From Basidiobolus meristosporus CBS 931.73 (lineage: Eukaryota; Fungi; Basidiobolomycota), in assembly GCA_002104905.1 (NCBI GenBank), contig MCFE01000536.1, positions 1-60,924 of the forward strand: a stretch of 60,924 nucleotides of DNA. The letters are read 5' to 3'. Below are positions 10,889 through 60,924 of this stretch, piece by piece. Positions within the stretch are counted from its first letter, which is position 1. Every line of letters begins with the position of its first letter. The notes beneath the pieces were generated by a model. The model was not told the DNA's origin. It saw nothing but the letters and a program-made list of their open reading frames with translations, and ran no database searches. The position numbers and the translations under genes are program-made.

Positions 10889-11645
10889 GGCAAGGTTGCA
10901 GAGGCAGACAAAGGTTAAAGGCAACGAAATAGTGGATAGCCACGCTCTGAAACTCAACTGTATATTTGATATATTAATAGTGATTAGGTTTAGTATAAAT
11001 GGAAGTCAGGTCAGGGTGAAGGAAAAAGAATTGAATGGGTTTGATGAATTAGTCGTCTGGGCTTCCTAATTTGTGAATAGTCATGTTGTTCAAACATGAT
11101 TGAAGTAGAGCGCAATCCTCTGAATCAATCCCAAAATATCCCGAGTGTCGACAGCCTCATGATTTCGCACGGGATTCATTATCAGTGCCATGTTCTTACC
11201 CACTGCTGCCTGCATAACAAAGAAACGGAAGCATGCCTTATTCACTTGATCCAGGTGACCTCTATGAGCGTCACTAGCCACTGGTGGGTCAATGACTGAA
11301 TCTAGGACAGATGACGCTCCCCGATGCCACAGGTTCGTCATAAATCGATAATCAAATTTCAAGTAGGATTAACTCGCTATGCGCTCTGGCTAGTATGATG
11401 GGAAACTCACGGGCAGGATATTACTGGCCAATCTTTGTAAAATGATGCTTTCTACTTCCCGGCACGTTGTGTGAGTACTTGGGTGAGAGTATCTGTTGAC
11501 CACACGACCATGGATATATATGGATTCAGCCTCTCAAAGAATCGGCTCAATACTTTATTCACTGAATAGCGCGTATTTCCTAGAGCCACTTACGACACAA
11601 AAGAAAGACTGCTTGCTGCATGCCTCTTTCACCTCACTATTCTTA

Positions 11646-15979: not shown

Positions 15980-16603
15980 TTTATTGTGTTGTATTGCTAC
16001 AGATGACTTTGATTGTTTGATAGATACTCCCATATTTGTTGATCTTCTTGTACATAGTATGAAACCCCTACATGCACCTCGCCCTTTCTTGTCACATATA
16101 CAAATGAATGCTTTTGCTATTTCCATTATGCTCACTATTCAATATACGTGAAGGTGCCGCGCATTATTGCCTTATGATTCGAAAAACAGAGATATAAAAG
16201 TGTCCTTTGAATCAAGGAGCCTCCCCCTCAATAATGCTCGACAGAACGCACCCATTCACCAATGCTCCGAAGGCAATGGCATGCATGGGGCGGCTGTTTG
16301 AACTAAACACGCCGAATATATGTGGCGAATGGGATTTCTTTCCTCGTGAGCGCTTCAGTTAGATGGTATTGCTGACGCGTCTCCAACAAGATGTACAGCC
16401 CCCTCCCCACCAGACAACACACTCATCCAAATTGCTGACATATCAGGAGATCTATTGACTTTAACCAAATCTAAATTACAGACGATACGAAAGATGACAG
16501 GAACGGAGAAGGGAAGTAAGCTACGGAGTGTAGGATATAAAGTGATGATATATTACAACTCAGCAGTGGAAGCGAAATCCATGCTGAGAATGTATTACCC
16601 GGT

Positions 16604-18863: not shown

Positions 18864-20669
18864 TTGAATGGAGTGTAGTGTGAAGAAACAAGTGTAGGAT
18901 AATGGTCCAAGCAGAAAATTTTGAAATTTATACCAGTTTTTCCGAGGGCAATTACCATGGCTTATGACAAGATCTACAAGAAACGTTAACCCCGTCAGTT
19001 CCAATTATACGGAGTCAATTAGATTTGCTATCTCAAGAAATTGTAGCACCGCCTGCTTCCAATTCTGGATAAATCATAGCTGGACCTGATTGTTTTGATT
19101 CTAGCTACGTTTGTTTGTTCAGATAAGCCTTGATGTGCGAAGATGCAACCACAAGAGTTGCATTGTCTCGTAGGAGATCAGGTTCCTGGAAATGATACAT
19201 CGGTGCGCACAGAGAGAAGGAGTAATGCGTTCTTCAATACTGACATCGTTGGTCGGGTTGCGGTGGACTTTGAATATCATGTAGTTTTGTAATACTAAAA
19301 GCCGATCAAACAGGTTGCTAGCGAATTTTCTGATCACCAATTTTCACGTGAAAGTGGTCAATGGAAGGGTATCCACAAAGGCTATAGGTCCAATGTGACC
19401 AATATGGTAACGGTGGGAGATACCATCATCTTGATATATATACATGAGGGAGATAACCGTTGTAGTCGTAAACAGATTGCCTGGTAGATTCACCATGGAA
19501 CCGCCTGGCAGTACTACACTAATATGGTTATATTTCAGATGGGTTTACCTATACCCTGCTATTAATAATAATAATCCTTGGGAACCTGTCCGATTGGACC
19601 GCAGTCTCATAAGCCGGGTAACGCGAAATCTATGCAAAATAGCCATTCATGTTAAGGAGGGTTAGGTTTCCATTAATGACCAGTCTGGGTAGGCGCTGCC
19701 AATGCTTCAGCGAAACTTATCAGAGCCTCCAGAATCCATGCTCCCATACTGACCTTAGAAGCTGTGAAGAATATTGCTCAAGATGTGCATACAACATAAA
19801 AAATAGATTCAATTGGCTGGATGATTGAGGAGACCCGTAATATGTGGGTGTCACAAAATTGCAGTAACATACAGGGCCGTCACCAGTGAAATCAGCCCGG
19901 TGGGTTTTGTGCACACACTTATACCGGTCTAAGGAAATGCATATCAGGTGTTTGTCACGTCTGATTCGATACCTTCATGGGATCTTGCGATTTTCATATC
20001 CAACAGACCTTGACTATGAGAACTCCTCGTTTCTCACGGAGGTATGTAAATGTCGCACTGGATTTCATAAATCGGGCTTGATTTGCAGATTGGATTCAAC
20101 CTGCACGATCTCGTCCATCCTGATTAATCTTATTCCAAATTGATTAACCTAGTTACATTAGGGATTACTTCACCACTTTACAAATTAGATTTGATATTCG
20201 AAGCTGGTCATCTAGTTCAGATCAAATATTACACCAACGGAATGGCCACTTGAAAGATGGTCTCATTGATCATTGCTTTAGCACTGCAGAAATATATGAC
20301 GAGCGGACGTTTTTCTGAATTGATTCACCTAAACGATCTTTTCCAATATAGTTAGCAATTACAAGGAGTCACTAATTCAAGTCTCATATACTGCACTGAT
20401 ACAGATATACGTATGATTGCGGCAATGCTAGTGGCAAATATAGTAAGACAGAGGGGCGGTAGGTATTGTTGAATGCTCTGATCGACAAATTTAGAAATTC
20501 CAAGACTTCGACAGTGTTCTAAAGTAAATAATTAGATCGGTAATTTGATGAGCTTTGATTGGAGTAACTCATTCCTACATTTCCCTGATCTAGGAGATTT
20601 CATAAAGGAAATTCTTGTTACTTGGCTCACTTGTCTAATTTCACTGCTTTTCATGAATTTGACTGTGAC

Positions 20670-38702: not shown

Positions 38703-39090
38703 AAACTTTGCACACATGTTCTTGGGACCTTCCTAAACATAATCTACGTTTTCGCTTTGCCAAGATCAAATAAAAGCACAAACACCACCTGTACATTCAA
38801 TATATCATTAAGTGAAAATCGCAGAATCTATTGGTTCTCCCAATCATCTCCAATATCTGCAAAACTCTTGCAAGTATAAGATATACAATAATATCTCAAT
38901 ATATGGGCATCAGTATTTATATAAAGAATAACTGGTACAAGTCACCTAAACTATTTTGATCAGGATCCAAAGAGTGCAAAATGTTGTAAATTTCATAATT
39001 ACACCCAAATATTCCCCTAGCTTAGTTACTTGGATCATTACCTACAAATCTTTGAGAATTCTGACCAAATTACTTCTGGGGATTTACTTC
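38703..39090 (+). mobile_element. Two truncated copia-type LTR fragments (3' half about 38703-38873; 5' part 38982 to about 39090)
   Basis: Similar to the LTR at 58341-58689 (aaactttgcacacatgttcttgggaccttcc; TGTTGTAA start at 38982). Confidence 0.7.
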
Positions 39091-39229
39091 AGCAGGCAGA
39101 ATGAATATATTGCTTAAGTACCACAAAGTATTTTGTGGATATTCAATAGGTATTCATGGCAAAAGTGGCAGCAACCAAGCATATATTTGCAAGATGCATA
39201 TGTACCAGCAATGCAAGGTATATGGCAGC

Positions 39230-39831
39230 ATTGCAAGTATCACAGTGAAAAGCTATAAAGTTCAGGTGATAGAGATGTGTTAATTGCAGTGGGTGTGCAC
39301 ATATGCAGAGGTTAGTAAACAGGAGACTGTGGTTTTCTTTTTATTTAAGCTACATATAGAGTACCCATGGTAGTAGTGGGTAAGCAAATAAATAGGCATG
39401 GCACTAAAGTGGAATGTATTAATGGTGCAAGGCAAGGTAGAAAATAAAATCTTTTTGGTAGATTGGTACAGTAGCATTATACAGGATTAGCAGTAGGCCA
39501 CCATACTACCATGTTAATGTCAACAGAGGTTTGCATAATGGCTATCAAAACACTGTCAAGTTTTTTGCCATATAAGGCAGTTGTACTTATTGGCCAGTTA
39601 GTTCCACTCAAATAAATGTAGACTGCATTAAGACTATCTATATGCCAAGCAAGCCCTGCAACTAGACCATTGAAACAACATCAAGTTTATTACTTTATTT
39701 GGCAGTAGAAACAGCAAATAGCCATCATGATCCCACTATAAGATTGTAAAGAGGGTCAAGAATTCCAAGCAGCTGGCATTATAACAGCCTCATCATGGGA
39801 TCCTGACAGCTGATCTAAATTGGATCCACCC
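39230..39831. repeat. Unclassified dispersed repeat, copy 1 (diverged inverted copy at 56785-57340)
   Basis: Anchors ttgcaagtatcacagtgaaaagct and taaagagggtcaagaattccaagcagctggcatt match the reverse complement of 57308-57340 and 56785-56870. Confidence 0.8.
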
Positions 39832-39952
39832 AAGGGACCAAAATATTTTTCATAGGGTTATTAGTATTTGATTTTCTTAATTCCTCATGCAGGAGCCTTC
39901 CAGTTTAGAAGTTTCAAGTCCAATCTTAAGTTCTGGACTCTTGGGAAAATAC

Positions 39953-41021
39953 TGTTGTAAGAGTCTTGGAGATATTGGAAGTGATTGGGAGGACAAGTAG
40001 ATTACATGGTTTTCACTTAATGATTCATTGAATGTAAAAGTAGTACTGATACTTTTAAATGGTCTTGACATAACAAACATGTAGAGTAGGTTAAGGAAGG
40101 TCCCAAGAACATGTGTGCAAAGTTTGGGGCTGTTTGGACAACTTGTCTAATTTTCATGTTCTGGGTAAATATTCTAAGTAAATCCCAACAAGGAATTTGG
40201 TCAGTATTCTCTAGGATTTGAAGGTAATGATCTAAGTGACTAGACTTGTTCCGTTGGATAGTGCCACATTGAGCCATGAGTGCCAAATAGTGCCATAGTG
40301 TGCCTGAGAGCCATAACAGACCTAAACTTGGCCACAGAGTGTGACATATATTTCTGCATATTCATGCAAAGCAGCCCCTGTGTTTCACCTACTGTGCAGG
40401 AGAAAATCAATTTTTTAACCTTTTTTTTGGGATCAAAATTGTGCATGACATAAAAGAGCACAGACAGACTGAAGATATGCATCTGGTACACAATACCCAT
40501 GGCACTCTAAATCTAGCCCCACAGGCTTGTAGCATGTCACAAAAATGCATGGCACTATCTTGGTCCACTGGTACTATCTGGCACTATAAGTGCTTTGTAT
40601 AGGTTCTACTTTAGGGCTAATATTTAAATATAGTGCCAGATAGTACCAGTGGACCAAGATAGTGCCATGCATTTTTGTGACATGCTACAAGCCTGTGGGG
40701 CTAGATTTAGAGTGCCATGGGTATTGTGTACCAGATGCATATCTTTAGTCTGTCTGTGCTCTTTTATATCATGCACAATTTTGATCCCAAAAAAAAGGTT
40801 AAAAAATTGATTTTCTCCTGCACCGTAGGTGAAACACAGGGGCTGCTTTGCATGAATATGAAGAACTCTATGCCACACTCTGTGGCCAAGTTTAGGTCTG
40901 CTATGACTCTCAGGCACACTATGGCACTATTTGGCACTCATGGCTCAATGTGGCACTATCCAACGGAACAAGTCTACTAAGTTAGGTGCATATTTAGGTG
41001 GAATTACAAATTTTTACAACA
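39953..41021 (-). mobile_element. Solo LTR A (about 332 bp net, interrupted by a foldback element)
   Basis: TGTTGTAA...TTACAACA ends; perfect 5-bp TSD AATAC (39948-39952 / 41022-41026). Confidence 0.92.
40242..40975. mobile_element. Foldback / MITE-like palindromic element, 734 bp, with arms of about 347 bp and a 40-bp spacer
   Basis: Ends AGACTTGTTCCGTTGG...CCAACGGAACAAGTCT; TSD ACT (40239-40241 / 40976-40978). The uninterrupted site aagtgACTaa(g/a)ttagg is seen in LTR B. Confidence 0.9.
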
Positions 41022-41039
41022 AATACAAGGTGCTGAAGC

Positions 41040-41370
41040 TGTTGTAAGAGTCTTGGAGATATTGGAAGTGATTGGGAGGACAGGTAGATATGTGGTTTTC
41101 ACTTAATGACATATTGAATGTAAAAGTAGTATTTATACTTTTACCTGGTCTTGGCATAACAAACACATAGAATAGGTCAAGGAAGGTCCCAAGAACATGT
41201 GTGCAAAGTTTGGGGCTGTTTGGACAACTTTGAGAATTTTCATGTTCTGGGTAAACATTCTAAGTAAATCCCAACAAGAATTTTGGTCAGTATTCTCTGG
41301 GATTTGAAGATGATGATCTAAGTGACTAAATTAGGTGAATATTTGGGTGGAAATACAATTTTTTACAACA
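41040..41370 (-). mobile_element. Solo LTR B (331 bp)
   Basis: TGTTGTAA...TTACAACA; TSD GAAGC/GAAAC; shares an 18-bp deletion with LTR A relative to the 58341 LTR. Confidence 0.9.
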
Positions 41371-41577
41371 GAAACTTGTCCATCAGGCTATTCAGGATGG
41401 TAACTATTACATCCTCATTGGTAGCTTGCACAGCCACTGATTCCACCTCCCTAACCAACATGATAAATCTATCAATTAGATTTCTTGTTTCACCTCCTGG
41501 GAGCATATTTGCTGCAAAATATTTTTGTCAAAGATACATCTTTATGGCTACTGATGGTGACTTGAAGGTTTCTACTA

Positions 41578-41923
41578 TGTTGTCAGAGTTTTGGAGATAT
41601 TGGAAGTTATTGGGAGAACACAAGAATGATGTGGTTTTCATTTAATGATTTATTTAATGTAAAAGTATTATACAAGTTATGCATAGTTTTGGCAAAAGCA
41701 ACACATAGAGTATGCTTAGGAAGGTCCCAAGAACATATGTGCATGGTCTTGAGCAGCTTGTATAGCTTTGAGAAATTTCATGCTTGGGTACCTAATGTTC
41801 TGGTGAAAAATGAAAAGTAAATCTCAACAAAGAATTTGGCCATAGTACCCTAAGAATTGTAGGTAATGATCAAAATGACTAAGTAAGGGGAATATGCAGG
41901 TGCAAATCTGAGCTTTTACATCA
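41578..41923 (-). mobile_element. Solo LTR C (346 bp, more diverged)
   Basis: TGTTGTCA...TTACATCA; degraded TSD TACTA/ATCTA; the gag relic aligns across it. Confidence 0.8.
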
Positions 41924-42245
41924 ATCTAATGCATGTGCAACAATCTGTGGCATTTTTGCTCTTGAGCATTGAATTAGCAATTTATCTGTAAATTTCCAGT
42001 AAAGTAGTGGTAGACAGTCCACAGAGTGACAGCTTGGGACTCATAACCTGTTCCAAGTGCTTTGGAGATATAGGCAATGATTGGTAGTACAAGCAGATTT
42101 TGTTGCTTCCCATAATGGTATATGGAATGTAATGGTAGTATTTATACTTTACATGTTCCTGGCAAAGTAGAGATATAGGGTATGCTGAGTAAGGTCTCAA
42201 GAACATGTATTCAGGTTCTTGGGCTGTTTGGACAGCTCACAAAAT

Positions 42246-42591
42246 TGTTGCAATATTCTGAGGAGTATTAGATGTGATGTGGAGAGCCAGAAGACTTATA
42301 TGTTATTCACATGTACATTTATTGATCAGAAGTATGGTATTTATTCTTTTGATGGAGAAAGACAAAAATCTGAGAGTTTGCTAGGGAAAGTCTCAATAAT
42401 ATGTGTGCAAATCTTCGGGTCTTTTGAACAGCTTGGAGAAAGGTCATAATTGGGGTATTTGATAATCTGGTGAAAGTATTCCAAGTAAATCCTAACAAGA
42501 GATTTGATCATGGCAGCATACCAATCACAAAGTAAGATTTATGTGACTAAGTTAGCATGAATATTCAGGTGACAACTTAATAATTGCAATA
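42246..42591 (-). mobile_element. Solo LTR E (subfamily 2), inserted in the host 5' LTR
   Basis: TGTTGCAA...TTGCAATA; TSD AAAAT/GAAAT; the host LTR resumes after it. Confidence 0.82.
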
Positions 42592-42737
42592 GAAATTTCA
42601 TTATCTGGGTACCAGATGTTTTAGTGAAAATATTCCAACTGAATCCCAACAAACTTGGTCAGAGTTCTCTAAGACTTATAGACTATAGTATAGGTGGCTC
42701 AGTTAGGTGAATAGCTAGTTGTAACTACCAAGCTTAC

Positions 42738-43085
42738 TGCTGTAATGATTAAGTTGTCACCTAAATATTTGTGCCAACTTAGTCACATAGATCTTATTCT
42801 TTAATTAGCATTCTGTCCTGACCAAATTTCTTGTCGGGATTTACTTAGAATATTTTCACCAAATTATCAGGTACCCATATTATGATCTTTCTCAAGTAGT
42901 CCAAAAGCCCCCAAACTTTGCACACATATTGTTCGGACCTTCCCTAATAAACTCCACACATTTGTTTGCTCTACTTTATCAACTGTATAAATGCCATACT
43001 TTTGATCAATAAAGCCACAAGTGAATAACATGTAAATCCTCTAGTTCTCCACATCACTTCCAATACTCCTCAGAATATTGCAACA
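42738..43085 (+). mobile_element. Solo LTR F (subfamily 2), inserted in the terminus of the host 5' LTR in opposite orientation
   Basis: TGCTGTAA...TTGCAACA, closely similar to the reverse complement of E. Removing it restores the host end ...GCTTACAACA; degraded TSD CTTAC/AATAC. Confidence 0.8.
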
Positions 43086-43333
43086 AATACAACAGCTTTC
43101 ACTTGATAATTTAATGCATCCATTATATTTACACAGCTGTATGATTTTAATTAAATTATTTTAGGTAGATACTTGCAAAGAGCCTGACTAAGATATTGTG
43201 TAAGCTCATGAGCTAGTAGCTAAACAAGTCATCTGAAGAATTAACTTGGTGTAAATATGTACCTCACAGCAGAAATTGCTTGGAAAACAGCAATTTCAAA
43301 AATTGACATTTTAGTACCAAATCAGAAGCAAAA

Positions 43334-43681
43334 TGTGCTCTAAACATTGAGCTTACATCCACACCATCCATATTATCTGCAACTCTACCCAGCTTATTGT
43401 CAAGTTGTGAGTTACATGCTTAGGATTTTGTTTGTACAATACAAGCTGATTCTTGGAATTATGAAGGCCTGGGAGTTATTAATATTCATGACCTGTCCAA
43501 CTGCCCCCAAACTTCGTCCACAGCTCTTGGGGACCTTTCTTAAGACAATGCTACCTTTAGTTCTGCAAGGTTCTCATAAGAGTAAAAATATCTTACTTGA
43601 ACTCAATGAACCACAGGTGAGTCTTATGCAATCCCTTTAGTTCTCCAAATCACTCCTAGTACTCCCTGGAATCCTGCAACA
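43334..43681 (+). mobile_element. Highly diverged solo LTR G
   Basis: About 348 bp, TGTG...CTGCAACA, with internal ccccaaacttcgtccacagctcttggggacctttc similar to the other LTRs; TSD not convincing. Confidence 0.6.
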
Positions 43682-46555
43682 AAATGTTTGTGCCAGCATT
43701 AGTTAGCTTAACCGTATTTGTCATACCTAGTGCCCATTTCTATCAGCTATATCTGCTAAGTAGCTCAGCTACTATAATTGCTGTTTGTAAGGTATAAATT
43801 TACTACAGAAAGCATATTGTTCCATAAATAAGTTCTTATTTGGTGTCACTTGGACAATTGCTGTTCACTCCGGACAGAGCAGTACCAATTCCAATATAAC
43901 CCAGCCCTGTTAGTCGAGTTGGACCCAATGCGCATAAGCGTGATATATAAGATTCAGCAAACACACATGCACTTCGATCTTTTCGCCTCAGTGTTGATAG
44001 CGCATTGCTTTAAATAGGCAATGGGGCACTGGGCCACTAATTATTCGGAATCGCACTGCCAAATCACCGTGCTCATCTGGTTCCACCCGACACGCTGATG
44101 AGATAACACATTTATAATCGCAGTCGCTCGTCACCCAAAAAGTCCGACTTCAACCCATTGAGGTCATGATATTTTGGACGAACTCCAATAATAGCCGCAG
44201 ACACTGCTGCATATATACTCAGCCAGTCATACTTACTAACTTCAGTGATCCAGAAATTTTCCAAAACGTTTGGAGATTTCTGGAGACCAATAACCTCGTT
44301 ACGAGAATAGATGCACCGACACCCACCAAGCAGAAATAGCCCATCTAGGACCATAGAACCCTGGGAAGTATAACGCTCTCGAATGAGAGTGAGGGTGCCT
44401 GGTGAATATACTTGATCTGCTACCGCTTGAAACCTAGAGAATATCAAAATACGCTGGTAAACCAATATCAAGACGGGCTTGGGATTTAAGCATAGAGAAA
44501 AAGCAAAATAGCCTAACGAACCCAATCCCATCGAAATAATTTGATAATGATATTACCCATTGTATTGGTAACAATCTAACGCCTTCTTCGCCCATTTTAG
44601 TAGGTGCAAGTTAGAACTCTGTTCTGGAACCAAAGATGGCATAAATGGACAAGTCAAAATGCAGTAGATACATGAAAGAGGATATCCCAGCCCATATTTG
44701 TAAACATCATGAATTCCTTCATCTTCGCACCCCAAGCACCCAAGTTCTGATTACCTTTTATGTGCGTGACATCGATTTAGCAATGATCTCAGCAGCATCA
44801 TACCTTTCTGGCTCTCTTGTTTGAGTTGCTGGCTGTGGGCATTTAACTGGCAAACTGAGTGATATACGACAACATGTACCAGGCAACCAGTTGGAGGACA
44901 ACGAGGCAAGGGCGTTGGACAGCACCTACTGTAGATATTGGTTTCTTGTTGAGCCAGCCAAGCGATTTTCCTTTGCTGCCCCTTTTCGATCTGAAGCTCC
45001 AAGTGAATGAAGCGTCAATTTATGTTAACCAGCAACCAACCACATGCCGCCCAGACACTACACATATCAACTGACCGTATTTCAATCTTGTGCCTTTCCA
45101 CAGATACGCTAAAAGTGCTAGCAATGCAATCACCCTTAAGTACATAACCAATCGCCGGGAGCATCAATCGACACCAGCCATATGTAGTCTCAAATTGGTG
45201 TGTTCTCGGACCCTGGTCACCTCTCGATACCCCGCCCTTCTAGCCCGGTACTAGGGTGCGTTGCCCCGTCGAGGGCCCAATGAGCGATACCCTTGGCACC
45301 CAGTAGCCGCAAAGTGCCCAGCAATACCATCGTCTGAGCTCCACATGGGTTGCTTGGTGTTGTAACAGGCAGATAGGTCAATGTGGGTGGAGCATGCGGA
45401 TACTCCACGCCCATTGGACTATCATTGCACTAGTGCAGAATCAGCACCCTGGTTAAATTCCCACCATCAATGCAATTCACGTCAGCTGGGGAGATTCTAC
45501 ACCTCGTAACTGAGCTAACAAATAAACCTGCCTCACTCGGAGTTATGGTGCTCGAGATAATCTCAGCAAGTGCCACAGGCGGATGCGTCATTCTAAGCCA
45601 GCAACCAGTGTCTGGCGAAACAACCCATTTTAACTGGAACTCGCATCCACCAAAGGTTTCAGAAAAATAGAACTAAACTCACAATAGCGAGGTATCAACT
45701 AGATTGGAATTCACAATGTTCCACCAAGAGGAAGGCCAGTGGATGCCTATCAACCAGGGAAATCACGTGCCGTCCTGGATTATACCAGCAGAGGGCTGGC
45801 TCTAAATTCATTAAGCGACATTCAGCTGCTCAAATGGCTCCAAATGTAACACCCAAAAAAGGTTCGTGTTCGTCGCTACAAGAGCATGCTTATCAGAGTA
45901 CAGTGTTCCGGTAAGTTCGCTATCAATGTAGTCTCCCCGGTTTATTTCGAGGCGGTAGTGGTCGTTCATTGATAACAGAATGGCCCTTTTCGAGCTCGTT
46001 ATCTAAGGCCGCTCTGCACGAATCAGATCGGTTTCGCCTATCTATTCGGTGGAAAAAAAAAGCTCACATCACCATTTGTCATACCAAAAATCTATCCTTT
46101 TGCTATCACTATTATTACATCAACATAATTTCGGCTGATTGATTTGGACATACATCAACGGCACCTCGTGTAATATTTGACTACAGGAAGGTCACTTTAG
46201 TAATCGTAGAAAATTAATCATTGTGACTTATTTTGATGGGCTGTTTCATATTCTCGCCACGCGAAATCTTTCCAGAATTCATCTCGCTCGTATCAAGCTC
46301 ATACAATTAGTAATCCCCAACTTGTGTGTTATTTACAAATAATCGCTTATGGGTGGTTACCGTGTCCTCGAGCATTTTCCGCTTTGGTGCTCGATTTTGG
46401 CATGACGTACTCCAGACCGCCACTTGATTGGGGGATATTTTGGTCCAGCTTCATCTTGATTCAAGGACTATAAATTTCCGCCGAAGCGCCCTCAACCTTA
46501 TTCTTCCCCCTTCTCTAGTTATTTGGTAGTGCCTTGTAACAGGTCAAGTTTCAAT

Positions 46556-48868
46556 ATGAGTCAATCTAGAGTTCAAGCGATCATGAACAGTGTTCACAGA
46601 CCTTCTCGTAAGGTCGAGTACCCCACCACCAACGGAAGAGGAATTTATCCTTCCGAATTCTATGGACAAAATGTGTTGACTCTTAAGGCTTTGTCCAAAG
46701 CTTTGCCCAAGCCAATCTTCGGCCAATTCCTCAAGCAAGTCAGAGGCCGCCAACATCTGGACAAAGTCACTGCCGATGCAGTTGCACATGCTGCTCGTGT
46801 GTGGGCCATGGAGAGGGGTGCTACCCACTACTCCCACTGGTTCCAACCTCAAACTGGCACTACTGCTGAGAAGCATGATTCTTTCCTGACCTTGAGAACT
46901 GGTCCTGCCGATGAGGTAAGACGTTCCTGCTCCCTTCCTCAATGACTTTCTATCTAATCATTCATTTCATAGGTCTTCGCTGTCGAGGCCCTCTCTGGTT
47001 CCCAACTTCTTCAATCCGAGCCCGATGCCTCTAGTTTCCCCTCCGGTGGTATGAGAACCACCTTCGAAGCTCGTGGTTATACCGTGTGGGATACCACCAG
47101 CCCCATGTTCATTCAACCAGGTCCTCACAATACCTCCGTTTTGTATATCCCATCTGTGTTCATTTCATACAATGGTGATGCCCTTGATGAGAAGACCGTT
47201 CTACTTCGCTCTTGTGAAGCAGTCTCCAAGGCTGCTTCCAGATTGTTAAATCTTCTCCAACCCGTTCCTGCTGGTGTCCCACCTCTCGTAAATCGCGTAC
47301 ACACCACCCTTGGTACCGAGCAAGAATTCTTCCTTGTTGATCGTGCCCTCTACGCACTCCGTCCTGATTTGAAGACCTGCGGACGTACTCTTATCGGCAA
47401 CCTTCCTCCCAAGCACCAACAAATGGAGGATCACTACTTCGGTAGAATGCCTACTCGCGTCTTGGCCGCTATCAGTGAGGTCGAATTGGAGCTTACCAAG
47501 CTTGGAATTCCCATCAAAACTCGTCACAACGAGGTTGCTCCTGCTCAATTCGAGGTTGCTCCTATCTTCGAGGAAGCTGTTGTTGCTGTCGATCACAATC
47601 TCGTTACCATGGAAGTTATTCATAAGGTTGCTCACAAGCACAATTTGAAGGTCTTGTATCACGAGAAGCCTTTCAAGGGTGTCAACGGATCCGGAAAGCA
47701 CTGTAACTGGGCTTTGTCCACTGATCGTGGTGAGAATCTTCTTGACCCTACTGTTAAGCCTGAAACCAACTACCGCTTCTTGTTGTTCTTGCTTGCTACC
47801 CTTCACGCTGTCCACAAGCACGGTGGCCTTCTTCGTGCTTCTATTGCCAGTGCTGCCAATGACCACCGTCTTGGTGCCGCCGAGGCTCCTCCAGGCATTG
47901 TTTCGGCTTTCCTTGGCGAGCACTTGAACGAAGTTTTGAACTCTATCGAGGAATCCCGCCCAGTCAAAACCTTCTCTCAACCTCATATCCAATCTATTAA
48001 GGTTGGCGGAACCGTCCTTGATGTCAAGGTCGCCTCCCTTCCAAATATCTCCCGCGATTTGACCGATCGTAACCGTACTTCTCCCTTCGCTTTCACTGGC
48101 AACAAATTCGAATTCCGTGCCGTTGGTTCTAAGCAATCACCTGCTTTCCCCGTCACTGTGCTTAACGCTGCTGTTGCTTCTGCTTTGGAAGACATCACCG
48201 AAGCCCTTTTGAAACAAAAGGGAACCAAGGATTTCGTTACCGATGCCGATAAGGTTGCCGTCATCAAGCAATTCATCACTTCAACCAAGCCTATCCGTTT
48301 CGAAGGTGACAACTATTCTGAGGCTTGGGCTCAGGAAGCTGAGAAGCGTGGTCTCCCCAATATCCGCAGCTCCGTCGAAGCTTTCAACCAATTGCGTCTT
48401 GATTCTCACAGAGACATGTTGATCAAGACTACTGGCGTCTTTACCGAATCCGAGTTGAACTCTAGATACCATATTCTCAACGAAAGATACTCCAAGGATG
48501 TGATCATGGAAGCCAATACCCTACGCACAATGGTCCAACAACAAGTGCTCCCCGCTGCTTATGAATACAGAAAGGAGCTTGCCACTTCTGCTGCCGCCAT
48601 GGCTGCCATCAATGTTGCTAGCGAGCCTGAGGTTTCACTCTTGAACCGCTTGAGCCCCATCCTTACTGACCTCCAATTGGAAAATGAAAATCTCCTTAAC
48701 CAAGTCGAGAAGGTCATGAACATGGAGCATGAAGAGCAACCTCAAGCCACCAGTGAAGTTATTGTACCACTTGTTGACCGCGTCCGTCAATTGTCCGACC
48801 AATTGGAGGATTTGGTTGCCGACAAGTACTGGCCTCTTCCCAAGAACACCGAGCTATTATTCTTCTAA
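46556..48868 (+). CDS. glnN-like: Glutamine synthetase type III (GlnN/GSIII), 2 exons, about 751 aa
   Basis: GATHYSHWFQP.TG.TAEKHDSF; intron 46916-46972; EPDASSFPSGGMRTTFEARGYT.WD.TSP; GTEQEFFL; HNEVAPAQFE; EKPFKGVNGSGKHCNW; NDHRLGA.EAPP; DRNRTSPFAFTGNKFEFRAVGS. Strong codon bias. Confidence 0.95.
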
Positions 48869-52047: not shown

Positions 52048-53022
52048 TCAGCTGAAGTTAAATCGATTGCGTGCATGATGGGAGGTGTTGTGTTGGTTAT
52101 GATGGGACCACATGGTTTTCCAATCACTTGGTAGAGGCTCGGATACGGAGTTTTCGGATCCTTTGCACTCCTTGTCGGTAATCTCGTCCCCCTCGATGGT
52201 GATGTGATAGCTTTCCAAACGGATGGGTGGTTGGAGGTCAAAGTTCTCGTTTTCCAGTATGTGCATCAGGTCGGACACGCGATTGGCGCTTTCGGGCCAC
52301 ACTTCGTCCGGGAAACAGCAGAGTAAGCGTCGTCTGATTCTTAGGAATTGGTTGAGGTAATCGTATTCGGTGCTATGTTTCCCAGCAAGCCTCATGATAC
52401 TACGAAGGCTGATCCCGTCATCGTTCTCGTATCCGTGCTGTAGCGCTGTGTCGTAGAAGATCAGTCTGCCGAGGTCGGAATGGATCCCGGCCTTGTTAGC
52501 GAGGTAGATGGCTGGCCGGAGAATGTTCTGATCCGCTACATCGACCTGAACCTGACGGAATTTCTCATCGCATGCTGCTTTCTTCCAGGCCTCTGTAAAC
52601 CCATACAGGTCAACGTCTTTCGGCTCGGTGTGGCAGCGGGTGGTGTTGGAGAACTCGTTGAGCGTGGGAAGGTACTTCTCAAAGCCGGTGGGCTGATCCT
52701 TCTTCACCTTCAAGTATTCCTGTATCACAGTCAGCGCTTCCCCGGCGGATGTGGTGAACCCAACGAACCCACAGGTATAACCTCGCTTGTCGTCGAGGTC
52801 ACGGCAGGATTGGTAATGGAAGTCGGTTCTGGAGTGCTCAAAAACATTCGATATCATCATGATGGTTTTCTTAGTGTCGGGCGACAATGGGGGGACATAG
52901 TAGTTGAAGCTTTTGGAAGGGATGCATGACTTGATGGCGGCCGTGAAGTTGAACACACCACAGTGCATGGTGGTGTTGGTATATGATCCCGCACAGTAAG
53001 GAAGACTCAATCCAGAGACCAT
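52048..53022 (-). CDS. GH46 chitosanase, intronless, about 324 aa
   Basis: ISNVFEHS (catalytic Glu), RDLDDKRGYTCGFVGFTT (catalytic Asp, Arg and Thr of the GH46 DGRGYTxG motif), FRQVQVD, YDTALQHG and YLNQFLRIR. Confidence 0.88.
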   Translation of the reverse strand: MVSGLSLPYCAGSYTNTTMHCGVFNFTAAIKSCIPSKSFNYYVPPLSPDTKKTIMMISNVFEHSRTDFHYQSCRDLDDKRGYTCGFVGFTTSAGEALTVIQEYLKVKKDQPTGFEKYLPTLNEFSNTTRCHTEPKDVDLYGFTEAWKKAACDEKFRQVQVDVADQNILRPAIYLANKAGIHSDLGRLIFYDTALQHGYENDDGISLRSIMRLAGKHSTEYDYLNQFLRIRRRLLCCFPDEVWPESANRVSDLMHILENENFDLQPPIRLESYHITIEGDEITDKECKGSENSVSEPLPSDWKTMWSHHNQHNTSHHARNRFNFS

Positions 53023-54520: not shown

Positions 54521-56784
54521 GAGAGCAGTTGGAGCAAAACCTGTATGCTGTCCTGATCGCTTCCCAGGGTGTTCTTATAGCCATGCCAACAAAGATCGCT
54601 CCTATTTCTCGTCCTGGCCAGTTTTGCGCTTGCTTTGCATATTTATGTACGAACAAATGAGAATCAAACCAAGGTGTGGATGGTTTAGAATAACCACCGC
54701 TTTGATCTCATTTATTTAGCAATTATTGCTCGCATAGCCCCTGAGCCATTACGAATTCTCTGCCATGTAGTTGCTCAGGACGCTAAGGTAATCGATGATG
54801 AAACAATGGTTGAACTTCTGGGCCGTTCAACAAGGATGGGGCTCCATGAGCTGCAAGCTGTTGGTGGGTCGGCACGCAGCTGTTCACCTGTCGTTTGTCC
54901 AACAAAGCTCCACCCACAGGTGTTGATCGGTTGGTTAGTAAATGGACAAGCCACCAAAAGGCCGGCATCAGATCGCAAACGTCAAAGAAACAAACAGTTT
55001 CAAACCGTCCATACCTCTAATAAATGTGCCCGGGAAGATTCTTGCCAGCCAACATATGCGTACATCCTAACACTACGGGCTCACCGAGTACTTGCTCGAA
55101 TTGATGCCCATGCGTTGTACACCATGCCCAGGAATGCCTGGATAACAGCATATGGAATAGGAGGGGATGACTTTAATCCTTTTGCAGCCAAGATGCTTAA
55201 CCATGTACTGCTTGCATGTACATAGGGATTGTGTCCAGGAGAAAGTTCGGATCTCCCATTGAAAATTCCAATCATCGAGATGATGGATTCTGAAGTGTCA
55301 CACCCACTCCGCCCAAAGCTAATCTATCGACCACCCTGAGTCTAAATCGCATTGGGTTTCGGATTGCTGTGGCATGATGCCATGGGTTAAACAAAAGTTA
55401 CAGGCCGATGACAAAAGAACATGCAAGCAAATCGTACCAACGCCACCCTTGACCAAGGTCCCGCGAGCGATGACGATTGTATACAGAAGTGCTGGTTATT
55501 CATCTTTTCTCAGCCTACACGCGGTCTTGTCCAAGTACGTTTTGATCGATGCCACTTTGCGTTACTATGGGAAGCAGTAGATCTACAGTAGGGACAGTCT
55601 ACATCTATCAATTGCTGTATAGAGCGTCAGATTTCTTATGGGAATTCATGATATCCGGAGAGTGGGCGTAGCTACAATCGCTCTCTCAAAAAGCGATGAG
55701 GTGGAATGAAATTTCGCTGGCGCACAGCGTAGTATGGGCTCGCATCCTTCATCCCCACTATTTTGACCTACGAGCTGGTTACCCGTGGAAATTCCCTAGT
55801 CTCGACTGCTTCTTGGATAATATCTTGGGCCGGATTTGCTGCCATCCTCGCAAAGCATCCATACTTGGCTGGATTTTGGCTAGGGTAGTCTCAATGCATG
55901 AATATGCGGGGCTGGGATGTCATTCCTTTCTATTTGTTTGAGCTGGCACGGGTGGTGTCTTAACATTGGATTTATTGTACCTGATTTTGGCCAACCAGCT
56001 TGAATGCTGTTTCAACCTCCTTATTATGTTGAATAGATTGACTACAGGCTGCCATATCCGGAAATTCTTGAATATTCACCCAACTTGGTCATGTAGATCA
56101 TTGCCTACAAATCTTGGAGAATTCCTACCAAATTCCTTGTCAGGACAAAACCCATTCATTAATGGAAACAAGTAGCTTTCCAGGTTGAATGACATTTTAG
56201 GCCCATACACCAGTAATACTACCATCAGAGCAGTAATCTGATATCTTAAGACTGGTGGCTGATTCAGGCTAATAAGGATTGGTGGCCAGCACAACTTGCT
56301 GTAAGAGTATTTGTTTGATGAGAACTCATCAAGTCATAAAGGCATGACTCTACCTGACCTCAGAGTAGCCTTGCTTCTTAGATGACTGTAACATTTACCA
56401 TCAGCATGTGCATCTGAAGCAGCCATTGCTTTGTAGTTAGTTGCAATGTTTGCTATCAAATATCTCTGAAATTTATGCACTTTATTGTATTAGGTGTGGT
56501 ATTTTTTGGCTTGACAATGCTTGTTTGTCTACATGAGCTTCTTTAGACAGGGTATTACAGGTGGACATTGTTTTCCACCTTGCAAAGGTGAAATTTATGA
56601 TGGGTGCATCATAGAACTGCAAACTCAAACATTATTATGACAGTTTTGAGGTCATATGTTGCCAGCTACATGAAGGTTGTCCAGGTGAATCATGCACAGA
56701 GTTATTTGCATCCTATAATATTTTAGGCAAGAAATAGCAGTAAATCATCAAAGCCCCTCCCCACAAAATATAATTTGGTCACAC

Positions 56785-57340
56785 AGGTGGATCCAATCCA
56801 GATCAGCTGTCAAGATCTTTTGATGAGGCCATCATAATGCCAGCAGCTTGGAATTATTGACCCTCTTTATGACTGTATGACAGGATTTTGACAGCATTTA
56901 GGTGGTCCTTTAGCAGAATTTGAGTAGCATTCTGATGGTTTTATTGTGGCCTGCACATATTTAGTGGGCCCAACTGGCCAGCATATGCAAATGCCATATT
57001 TGGAAAAATTGATGGTATTTTCATGGCCTTGATTTGAACATCTGTTTATATTATTGCAGCTGCACATTGGCCTACAGCTAGTACTTTATAATGCTACTGT
57101 ACCAATTTACCAAATGGTATTTCCTTTTGCTACCTCCCCTTGTGCCATTCATATATTCTATTTTATAACAACCCCAATGTATTTGCTTACCCACTGCTAC
57201 CATGGATATTACATATGTTGTTTGAATCAACAAAACACTATAGCTTCCTGTTTACTCACTACTACATATGGCACACCTGCTGCAATTGACATACTTCTAT
57301 CACCTTTACTTTACAGCTTTTCAGTGTGATACTTGCAAAG
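56785..57340. repeat. Unclassified dispersed repeat, copy 2 (inverted relative to 39230-39831)
   Basis: Reverse-complement matches to copy 1 at both ends and through the middle. Confidence 0.8.
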
Positions 57341-58340
57341 TGGCCATTTACCTTGTATTACTGGTAAGATATAAAAGTTATTATGACAATCCCATTAAAA
57401 GACCATCTCAATTTCTAAGTCCCATGACTAAGAGGTATTGATCCCATCAGGACTCTGTGCAAAGGCTGTCAAAAAGTTATTGCACCCCAGATTTCATAAA
57501 AAACTTGGTCAAAATTTTTCATTACAACAATACATAAATGGCTTTTGATTGGTTCTCTGCCATTTTTCCCACTTTCTGATCATGGACACTCTATCACCTC
57601 CTACATTTGTGCGCATTGATTGGCTATTGCCTCTTTTTCACACTCCTTACTTCCTGACTCAACTGTTTCTCTTACTTTTCATGCATACAAGTTGATTTAT
57701 TTCCATTGAAACTTCAGTTGTACCTTAATTGCCAATTGTATTGACCTACACAAGTACCCATACCCTATACTAGCATTAAGCCCAACCCCACACTCAACAA
57801 ATATTTCTGCTGTAATGCTCTGTTTCCTTGACTTTGGCAGGAACTGTACAGCTTTATGCTATTGTTCATTAACTGGTTTCCATATGTCCTGGTCTTCAGC
57901 TGGCACTGCAAGGTCTAGCACCTCATCTGTCAGTCATTGCACTAGATCCTTGGAATATTCAAGTGTGTTTTCTTGAGCACTGTTCTTGAAGAAGTGCTGC
58001 AACCTCTTGGTGTGCCTATTAATGTTCCAAAATTGCACCAAAGGCATTGTAATAACCTTTTGATTCTTGATGTTGTTACTTTTTCTGTCTGTGGGATCTC
58101 TACTCTGTCAATAATGGAGGATGCAGAGGCTGTGGTAGACAAATTGCCTTTCTTTGCAAGCTCATCTACCTCACTGGAGTGTAGCTCAACTGGCTGTGCT
58201 TCCAACTCTTGTGAAAATAGCTGTTTTCTTGTTAATAATTCTTCTTAGCTATGATGGGATTCAGTCTGGTTTGGACTTACAGCATCAATTGGCTAAGACT
58301 GCAGCTTTTTTCTCATGCTTCCCTGTCTCTGGCTTAGATA

Positions 58341-58689
58341 TGTTGTAAAAATTTGTATTTCCACCTAAATATTCACCTACATTAGTCACTTAGATCATCA
58401 CCTTCAAATCCTAGAGAATACTGACCAAATTCCTTGTCAGGATTTACTTAGAATATTTTCACCAAAATGCCAGGTACCCAGAACATGAAAATTCTCAAAG
58501 TTGTTCAAACAGCCCCAAACTTTGCACACATATTCTTGGAACCTTCCTTAACCTATTCTACGTGTTTGTAATGCCAAGACCAGGTAAAAGTATAAATACT
58601 ACTTTTACATTCAATAAATCATTAAGTGAAAACCACATAATCTACTTGTTCTCCCAATCACTTCCAATATCTCCAAGACTCTTACAACA
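58341..58689 (+). mobile_element. 5' LTR (349 bp) of a Ty5/copia-like element
   Basis: TGTTGTAA...TTACAACA 8-bp terminal inverted repeats; TATAAATA at 58591-58598; immediately followed by the PBS. Confidence 0.92.
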
Positions 58690-58701
58690 GGTTATGAGCC
58701 C
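58690..58701 (+). promoter_or_regulatory. Primer-binding site complementary to the anticodon arm of tRNA-iMet (half-tRNA priming, Ty5/copia type)
   Basis: GGTTATGAGCCC is the reverse complement of GGGCUCAUAACC in fungal initiator tRNA-Met, and it abuts the LTR's terminal CA. Confidence 0.88.
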
Positions 58702-60924
58702 CAAGCTGTCACTCTCTGCAATATCTACTACTGCTATTACTGGAATTTTTCCCTCTGCTGAAAAGTTGGATGGCTCTAACTACCAAGTGTGGAAGGTGAA
58801 GATGAAGATGCTGCTACAAGAAAGAGGCCTTTGGGATATTGTCATGGGAGAAGAATGCCCTCCTAAAAACGTGGGAGAGGAAGCCTTAAAGTACCAGAAG
58901 AAAGAACAAAGTGCCTTTAACTGCATTTGCCTTAATGTCAAGGACAAATTGCTAATTCAATGCTCAAGAGCAAAAACGGCAAAGAATGCCTGGAAGGCAT
59001 TAGAAGACACCTACCAGTCATGCTCAGCTGCCAAGAAAATGTATCTGAGAAGAAAATTCTTTACTACAAAGATGCTGCCAGGAGAAGAAATGAAAAATCT
59101 AATTAACAGAATTACCGTGCTGGTAGATGAGATGAAATCTGTGGGCGTACCAACTACTGATGAGGATGTGATAGTTACCATCCTGAATAGCCTGACAGAC
59201 AAGTTTCAGGGCCTTGTGTCAGCCCTAGAATCCAAAACTGAAGATGTGACCTTAAATTACATATATGGAAGGCTCCTGGAGGAAGAATTAGGAAAATCAG
59301 GCACCAATAACAAGGAAAATGACAATGCTTTCATAAGCATTGATAACCAGGAAAGAAGGTACTCAAGACCCTTTAAAGGCAACAGCAACCTATTTTGCAA
59401 CTACTGCAAAAGGAAAGGACACACATCAGACCAGTGTTTCAAAAAGAGAGATTATCAGCAAAAGAAGCCTGAATATGGAAATGCTGCCACAACTGAAGAT
59501 AGACTATTCATATCTGCACTAAATATGACCACAAAAAAGGATTCTCAGACGTAGTATATTGACTCTGGAGCTTCTCAACACTTTACACACCAAAAAGAAC
59601 TTTTTACCCAATATCAAGAAATTCCAATTAATAAGGTTTTCATGGGTGATGATAGAACACTTGATGCAGTGGGAGAAGGAGCTATCCAAGTGAACCTTAG
59701 AAGCAGTGAAGGAAGCCATACACTGACCTTTAAAGAAGTACTCTATGTACCAGAAATAGCCAAGAACCTACTCTCTGTAAGCAAGGCCACAGCAGAAGGA
59801 CTCAGTTTCAGTTTTGACAATTCTGGATGCAGGATCACTGATCAAAATGGTGCTCATATTGCTTTGGGCATCAGAGATCAGAATCTATACAAGTTGAATT
59901 ATATTCCATCATATCTGGAAGCCAATATAAGTAACTTAAATGAAGAAACACCAATGCTTTGGCACAGGAGATTTGGGCACATCAATTTTGATTATTTGCG
60001 CAAAATGATCAAAGATCAGCTAATTTCTGGAGTGAAAATTGATCCCCCAGCTAATTTGGAGCACTGTGAAGCCTGCATATATGGGAAACAAGCTAGACAA
60101 CTGTTCAAGAGCTCTGGGTTATTCAAAACTAAGAAAAAATTAGATCTAATTCACTCAGAGCTTTGTGGACCTATGCAAAATTTATCCTTAGGCGGGATGA
60201 AGTATTTAATCACTTTTATTGATGATTATACAAGATGCACATGGGTCTACTTCATGGAGAGAAAGGAAGAAGCTCTGTCTAAGCTCAGGGAGTTTAAAGC
60301 CATGGTGGAGAGAGAAACTGGTGAAAAAATCAAGAAAATATGCTCTGACAATGGTGGAGAATATACCTCAAAACTCTTCATCCACTTCTGCAAAATTCAT
60401 GGGATAAAGCAAGAGACTACTGTACCATACTCCCCACAGCAAAATGGAGTAGCAGAACAAGCTAACAGATCAATAATTGATATGGCAAGATCTATAATCC
60501 ATGATCATAAATTATCCTATGATTTTGGGCGGAATCAGTTGCTACTGCTGTATACCTTAGAAATAGGAGTTATAACAGAATACTTCGTGATTCTACTCCA
60601 TTTGAAGCATGGTATGGATACAGACCAAGTGCAGAACATCTAAGAATATTTGGGTGCACAGCATTTGCCAAAAAACTGGCCGGAAATCAGTCAAAATTTG
60701 AGCCAAAAAGTGTAAAATGCATATTTTTGGGCTACTGCAATGAGAGTAAGGCATACAGACTCTACAATACCAAAGCAAAGAAGCGGATCAAGTCCAGGGA
60801 TGTGTTGTTTGATGAAAATTCAAAATTTTCACAAAAAAATGACATCAGATGATGACAAAAATTTTATCTCAAGTCCACCAATTGTCAGGATTGAATCAGA
60901 GCAAAACAATGAAAATTTTTTCAC
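58694..60924 (+). pseudogene. Defective copia-type gag-protease-integrase ORF, runs off the window
   Basis: Gag EKLDGSNYQVW...GLWDIV; Zn knuckle CNYCKRKGHTSDQC; protease (W to stop, TAG 59552-59554)YIDSGAS; integrase HHCC LWHRRFGH...CEAC; IHSELCGP (D to E, 60158); SDNGGEY; PQQNGVAE; one-base frameshift at about 60523-60527 before WAESVATAVYLRNR. Confidence 0.93.

Follow-up and report, generated by a model that had tools for sequence, protein, structure and literature searches.

Dense piles of solo long terminal repeats (LTRs) are familiar from the yeast retrotransposons Ty1 and Ty3, whose solo-LTR stacks are found upstream of tRNA genes. In the case of Ty5, a hexapeptide at the C-terminus of the integrase binds Sir4 (PMC7459421), and clusters of Ty5-like elements mark the centromeres of some yeasts (PMC2997560, PMC12711049, PMC13017519); the literature thus agrees with the starting premise of an earlier, sequence-only reading of the DNA considered here, that Ty5 targets silent chromatin and that Ty5-like clusters are found at yeast centromeres (PMC7459421, PMC2997560). 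In plants, LTR retrotransposons are known to insert into copies of the same family, with 1,491 pairs of such “autoinsertions” described, the 3' untranslated region being preferred and the LTRs and coding regions avoided (Jedlicka et al., 2019, PMC6911290). Here we analyze a 60,924-nt stretch of the fungus Basidiobolus meristosporus CBS 931.73 (contig MCFE01000536.1; hereafter, the window), in which five solo LTRs have broken up a relic Ty1/copia retrotransposon of the same family within a small CpG-depleted island. Our literature search yielded no study of how retrotransposons are targeted in Basidiobolus.

Family LTRs were placed by blastn, using the LTR and the interior of a reference element, and by an nhmmer profile built from seven LTRs, and the two maps agree; the reference throughout is the copia element starting at position 58341 of the same window. 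The relic and the LTRs that interrupt it are:

39857–43094, minus strand: relic Ty1/copia element, which retains the 5' LTR, the primer-binding site (PBS) and gag as far as internal position ~621 and has five solo LTRs within it (blastn and excision alignment).
42049–43094, minus strand: relic 5' LTR in three pieces, 42049–42245, 42597–42737 and 43091–43094, split by E and F (nhmmer profile positions 150–349 and 5–155).
42036–42048, minus strand: relic PBS GGTTATGAGTCCC, with the gag ATG inside it (pattern search; reference counterpart 58690–58702).
39953–41021, minus strand: solo LTR A, made up of 336 bp of LTR and a foldback; target-site duplication (TSD) AATAC at 39948–39952 and AATAC at 41022–41026; inserted at gag ~533.
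41040–41370, minus strand: solo LTR B; TSD GAAGC at 41035–41039 and GAAAC at 41371–41375; inserted at gag ~517.
41578–41923, minus strand: solo LTR C, with 76% identity to the reference; TSD TACTA and ATCTA; inserted at gag ~312.
42246–42591, minus strand: solo LTR E, a member of the second subfamily; TSD AAAAT at 42241–42245 and GAAAT at 42592–42596; inserted at relic LTR positions ~150–155.
42738–43085, plus strand: solo LTR F, a member of the second subfamily; TSD CTTAC and AATAC; inserted 4 bp inside the outer end of the relic LTR.

Both searches thus recover what the sequence-only reading had described, five solo LTRs in one relic retaining its 5' LTR, PBS and the start of gag. Each of A, B, C, E and F is a complete LTR with no interior, flanked by a direct duplication, and its removal restores the target. 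The two TSD copies match completely for A (5/5), at four of five positions for B and for E, and at three of five for C and for F, that is, at 19 of 25 bases versus 0.27 per base expected (binomial P about 4e-7). In-silico excision of each LTR together with one TSD copy yields a relic spanning LTR, PBS and gag, which aligns end to end with the reference (58341–59311) across every junction, as had been claimed for the element at 58.3 kb. As TSDs of 5 bp are produced by ordinary integrase-mediated insertion, the five LTRs are independent integrase-type insertions, and the TSDs exclude recombination with complementary DNA or gene conversion as their source. The restored relic lacks about 190 bp of gag (reference 58750–58940; the deletion is at 41986/41990) and breaks off at gag ~621, abutting a second repeat at 39090–39856.

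The gap of 18 bp between A and B, reported previously and confirmed here, consists of 13 bp of relic gag and the 5-bp right-hand TSD copy of A; the presence of relic gag in this gap means that A and B inserted separately. We also considered A and B as the LTR pair of one internally deleted element and rejected this possibility, the spacer being relic gag without a PBS and the outer flanks matching at three of five positions. The spacing itself is not significant, with a chance expectation of about one in three. The same holds for orientation: A, B, C and E are oriented as the relic and F is opposite, so the earlier count of four in five is correct, but it does not reach significance (one-sided 6/32). 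No motif is common to the five target sites.

A region composed of repeats could also result from misassembly, with repeats collapsed or chimerically joined. The LTRs, however, are 6–40% divergent, each has its own TSD, and their excision gives one continuous relic, which a misjoin would not, so that an assembly artefact is scarcely credible.

The family can be identified from the reference element and its relatives at two further loci, both retrieved by similarity searches.

58341 to beyond the window end, plus strand: reference copia element; LTR 58341–58689 (349 bp, TGTTG...CAACA); gag ATG at 58694.

The reference PBS, GGTTATGAGCCCC (58690–58702), directly follows the LTR and includes the gag ATG. 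The order of Pfam domains in this element is Retrotran_gag_2, Pol_BBD, gag_pre-integrs and rve. RVT_2 is found downstream of the integrase in element X3 of locus L001, and sequence resembling reverse transcriptase (RT) is also found downstream in L002 (both loci are described below). Judging by the TG...CA ends of the LTRs, the 5-bp TSDs and the position of integrase before RT, the family is Ty1/copia (Pseudoviridae). The sequence GGTTATGAGCCCC presumably matches the yeast initiator tRNA's anticodon stem-loop; for comparison with the host, no initiator tRNA gene was found in the window or the fetched loci. The suggestion of the sequence-only reading that the PBS is of the Ty5 type is in line with this presumed match and with the Ty5-type mode of priming, from the initiator tRNA's anticodon stem-loop (PMC5371799).

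A search of protein collections with gag as the query gave one close match, from Basidiobolus meristosporus CBS 931.73. The protease–integrase query gave one close metagenome contig, the other matches being generic copia sequences from outside Basidiobolus, ~40–45% identical. L002, a 3.3-kb metagenome contig (ENA ERZ27274739 k141_126514), carries an intact gag–protease open reading frame (ORF) of the family, 570 aa long, with the best local protein alignment to the window copy at 85% identity, and is the sole intact relative. Its order, 3' internal end followed by LTR and gag, was considered as evidence of nesting and set aside, as it is most simply an assembler path through the shared LTR. 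The reference element itself is damaged: a TAG is present at 59552–59554, in place of the W codon that is conserved in copia elements ahead of the protease DSGA motif, and two single-base homopolymer changes (T at ~60540 and A at 60833–60839) throw the integrase out of frame and then back. These frameshifts could be real mutations or homopolymer errors of long reads.

The LTRs of the family are of clearly different ages. The reference, A and B are 91–94% identical and form a young group, in which A and B have a 17-bp deletion in common. C is 76% and the relic LTR 73% identical to this group, while E and F are 79% identical to each other and 64–70% identical to the other LTRs. By these identities the family LTRs fall into at least three groups, and this divergence shows that the insertions were spread over a long time and came from diverged sublineages. 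This supports the earlier proposal of repeated insertions over time, with three groups in place of the two subfamilies then recognized. The proposed collapse of each insertion also stands, as each one survives only as a solo LTR, for which LTR–LTR recombination is the standard inference.

The stack lies in one of two islands of unusual composition, which also contain further fragments of family LTRs:

38703–43870: island 1, 5.2 kb; G+C content (GC) 0.37, CpG observed-to-expected ratio (o/e) 0.07, TpG+CpA o/e 1.36.
56059–60924 (window end): island 2, with the K56 LTR fragment, DNA resembling the second repeat and the reference copia element; same CpG character.
38703–38873, plus strand: LTR fragment G, LTR positions 177–347, at the left edge of island 1.
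38982–39089, plus strand: LTR fragment H, LTR positions 1–109, abutting the second repeat.
43454–43681, plus strand: LTR fragment I, very decayed, similar to the E/F subfamily (nhmmer).
56069–56145: LTR fragment K56, in island 2.

Outside the islands, GC is ~0.46–0.48, CpG o/e 0.78–0.79 and TpG+CpA o/e 1.14. The island edges are sharp with respect to CpG, and all 13 of the 13 longest CpG-free gaps of the window are within islands 1 and 2. Every family LTR of the window falls in one of the two islands, and the nhmmer profile finds none in the other ~50 kb. The claim that the stack sits in silenced copies agrees with these values, a CpG o/e of 0.07 versus 0.78 outside being the mark of long-term silencing or methylation; the island DNA is probably silenced and marked by 5-methylcytosine (5mC).

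H and I were also considered as halves of one older LTR enclosing the stack. This was rejected, as H is 80–84% identical to the reference group, while I is 55–61% identical to everything and resembles E and F; moreover, their ranges (1–109 and profile 109–349) probably overlap.

A similar arrangement is observed at L001, a 22-kb locus of the Basidiobolus meristosporus CBS 931.73 assembly that was retrieved solely through gag similarity and has the LTR, the internal region and the second repeat in common with the window at 74–89% nucleotide identity. Its island (11.1–20.2 kb; 9 kb) has CpG o/e 0.00–0.09 and sharp edges, and contains an LTR fragment at the edge (X0), the elements X1 and X2, the opposite-strand X3 and Harbinger-like DNA. 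X2 sits in the gag of X1 at ~388, with GATAC on its left, and the LTR of X3 abuts X2. A candidate reuse of the site of C in this locus (a blast extension at 11342–11400) proved unfounded when the sequence was read. One isolated old solo LTR (3032–3335 of L001) lies between ordinary genes in CpG-normal DNA and retains eight CpGs, whose positions in the island LTR copies are nearly always occupied by TG, CA or TA. The base changes of the island LTRs fit the CpG-to-TpG decay of silenced repeats.

The clustering was assessed as the probability that at least five of 5–10 later events fall within the 0.97-kb relic under three models of the target, bearing in mind that the stack was chosen post hoc out of about 1,700 windows. 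With targets uniform over the window, P is 1e-9 to 3e-7; with targets uniform across both islands, which measured 7.6 kb prior to the insertions, P is 3e-5 to 5e-3; and for island 1 alone, P ranges from 0.006, if five events are counted, to 0.11, if eight are allowed. About ten family insertions are found in 7.6 kb of island DNA, versus none in 18.7–26.4 kb of CpG-normal DNA without long ORFs. The description of the surroundings as gene-dense is only roughly true: 37–52% of the non-island DNA has no ORF of at least 100–150 codons. The preference of the family for islands is robust, while a preference for its own DNA inside the islands is not.

It had been proposed that integration is directed to the family's own copies, and we have considered, more generally, that the integration machinery might recognize either the sequence of the family or its silenced copies, the LTR and early gag being hot spots. 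The ~0.97-kb relic contains all five nested LTRs of island 1, the other ~1.8 kb none (P about 0.006), X2 of L001 is also in early gag, and same-family autoinsertion is known in plants (PMC6911290). However, the P value rises to 0.11 once eight island-1 events are allowed, the target sites have no common motif, the spacing of A and B is unremarkable, and the case is a post hoc one. Moreover, in the window and L001 taken together, about six or seven family events (A, B, C, E, F, X2 and probably X3) fall in family DNA. About eight or nine others, namely the relic itself, fragments G, H, I and K56, the reference element, X0, the isolated solo LTR and, perhaps, X1, are in non-family DNA. Hits into the family's own DNA are therefore about 45% of events, against a family share of ~60% in the present island DNA, and do not exceed what island preference by itself would give; self-targeting is not supported. 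As about half of the sampled insertions are in non-family island DNA, preference for, or retention in, islands fits better, and homing of the family to itself appears unlikely.

A preference of the integrase for AT-rich or easily bent DNA would also concentrate insertions in the islands, which are the most AT-rich DNA nearby, with GC 8–10 points below the flanks, and plant LTR elements do show a weak target bias associated with palindromes and predicted nucleosome occupancy (PMC6911290). Against this, five non-island 1-kb segments with GC of 0.39–0.41, similar to that of the islands (0.35–0.40), contain no family LTR, which gives roughly P 0.006 versus equal use. We consider an explanation by DNA properties to be very doubtful.

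Besides the copia LTRs, island 1 contains two features of other origin:

39090–39856, minus strand: second repeat, fam2, 767 bp, 69–74% identical to 56759–57372 and to 17325–17943 of L001.
40243–40975: foldback in solo LTR A, 733 bp, with 357-nt arms, 97% complementary, and a 40-nt loop.

The repeat fam2 recurs in all three islands (in L001 also at 19318–19965), and its L001 copy lies ~1.4 kb from an ORF for a DDE_Tnp_4 (PIF/Harbinger) transposase; fam2 is probably a terminal part of a Harbinger-like DNA transposon. One 1.2-kb contig was matched by the Harbinger transposase query. The foldback has CpG o/e 0.09 and an apparent 3-bp duplication, and a miniature inverted-repeat transposable element of the PIF/Harbinger type would fit it. 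Island 1 also includes ~650 bp of CpG-free DNA with no family assignment.

The association of unrelated integration chemistries in island 1 (copia, the Harbinger-like fragment and the foldback) is expected if copies accumulate passively, that is, if integration is near-random, insertions in or near genes are purged and those in dead transposon DNA are retained. The nested copies are all old solo LTRs (5/5), and dense transposon regions are commonly nested (PMC6911290), which also agrees with passive accumulation. However, the CpG-normal DNA without long ORFs is empty of the family, as described above; the isolated old solo LTR of L001, which lies between genes, is evidence that insertions of this kind can be tolerated; and the youngest LTRs (A, B and the reference) likewise are in islands. 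We therefore regard passive accumulation as a tentative alternative, possible but not favored.

A candidate for a targeting determinant is found in the linker between integrase and RT:

60863–60880, plus strand: FISSPP in the integrase–RT linker of the reference element, ~20 residues past the SH3-like end of the integrase.

The Ty5 targeting domain is reportedly an LxSSxP peptide (LDSSPP) near the integrase C-terminus, attributed to Xie and co-workers in 2001. The window linker, N-F-I-S-S-P-P-I-V (60860–60886), resembles it, and that of X3 in L001 (minus strand, near 16150), whose frame is continuous here, is N-L-I-*-S-P-P-I-V. Among 122 proteins (60,537 residues), almost all of them from other copia elements, the pattern [LIVMF]xSSxP has four matches, and it has none in 1,520 integrase-tail residues. 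By analogy with Ty5, a tail peptide L[IV]SSPP may tether integration to CpG-methylated islands through a partner other than Sir4, although we consider this specific proposal rather unlikely to be correct.

Taken together, these observations can be accounted for as follows. An old Ty1/copia element inserted first, and at least five further copies from three diverging sublineages then integrated, over a long time, into its 5' LTR and early gag; each nested copy, now a solo LTR, would have collapsed via LTR–LTR recombination. The integration of the family would be biased towards silenced, probably 5mC-marked, transposon chromatin; the tether could be the LxSSxP-like peptide of the integrase tail, at the place of the Ty5 targeting domain, and the purging of gene-proximal insertions would sharpen the pattern. 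As the family is the main constituent of the islands, it would mostly hit itself, and self-hits would be a by-product of island preference, without recognition of its own sequence. That integration is directed to silenced transposon islands, with the pattern sharpened by selection, is the explanation we favor, with middling confidence.

Several points weigh against it. The Harbinger-like piece and the foldback in island 1 can be explained by general tolerance of insertions, without any tether. The CpG loss of the LTRs is largely common to all island copies and may have been inherited from depleted source copies; as several of the losses are common to all of them, inheritance rather than decay in place is possible. 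Inspection of the integrase C-terminus, which had been suggested as a check, has a divided outcome, as FISSPP in the window and LI*SPP in L001 speak for the motif, while L002, the sole intact relative, has TISILP at the same position. Finally, Sir4, the partner of Ty5, is present only in Saccharomycetaceae (PMC6394760).

The first element at one of the CpG boundaries is a truncated family LTR in three of three islands (38703, 56069 and 11144 of L001), which hints that the islands were founded by family insertion into unique DNA. The genes neighboring the islands include those for a type III glutamine synthetase (GSIII_N, Gln-synt_C and Gln-synt_C-ter; 46523–48868) and a GH46 enzyme (52048–53022). 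Both families are mostly bacterial, and horizontal acquisition of the two genes is possible.

The stack preserves, within ~0.9 kb, a clean record of retrotransposons landing repeatedly, which can be fully resolved, and the locus presents an abundant copia family confined to small, probably silenced pockets between the genes of a compact fungal genome. If the tail peptide is not a tether, the locus is an ordinary transposon nest. Unlike the plant autoinsertions, the Basidiobolus insertions affect the 5' LTR and early gag, and they are known from one stack and one extra locus. The similarity to the Ty1/Ty3 stacks is in the dense nested piles of solo LTRs, which in Ty1/Ty3 come from repeated targeted integration at one place; however, no tRNA or other Rfam RNA gene was found in the window, which excludes an RNA polymerase III landmark as the cause of the pile. 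The yeast centromeric clusters are likewise GC-poor and composed of Ty5-like elements and solo LTRs (PMC2997560, PMC12711049, PMC13017519), but island 1 is only 5 kb long and lies between ordinary genes, with the second island 12 kb away, and is thus too small and too near island 2 to be centromeric.

The closest comparison is with Ty5, as the Basidiobolus family is also of the copia type, its copies are restricted to small silent-looking domains, and its integrase tail carries a candidate hexapeptide that resembles LxSSxP. The differences are that the host is an early-diverging fungus without Sir4, that the motif is missing in the intact relative L002, and that the presumed silencing in the Basidiobolus islands, unlike that in budding yeast, leaves a footprint of CpG loss. 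If the peptide nevertheless acts as a tether, small islands would be self-reinforcing landing pads, and the Ty5 paradigm would extend beyond yeasts and provide a handle on the partitioning of transposons and genes in early-diverging fungi; heterochromatin targeting guided by a peptide would in that case be far older or more widespread among copia elements than budding yeast.

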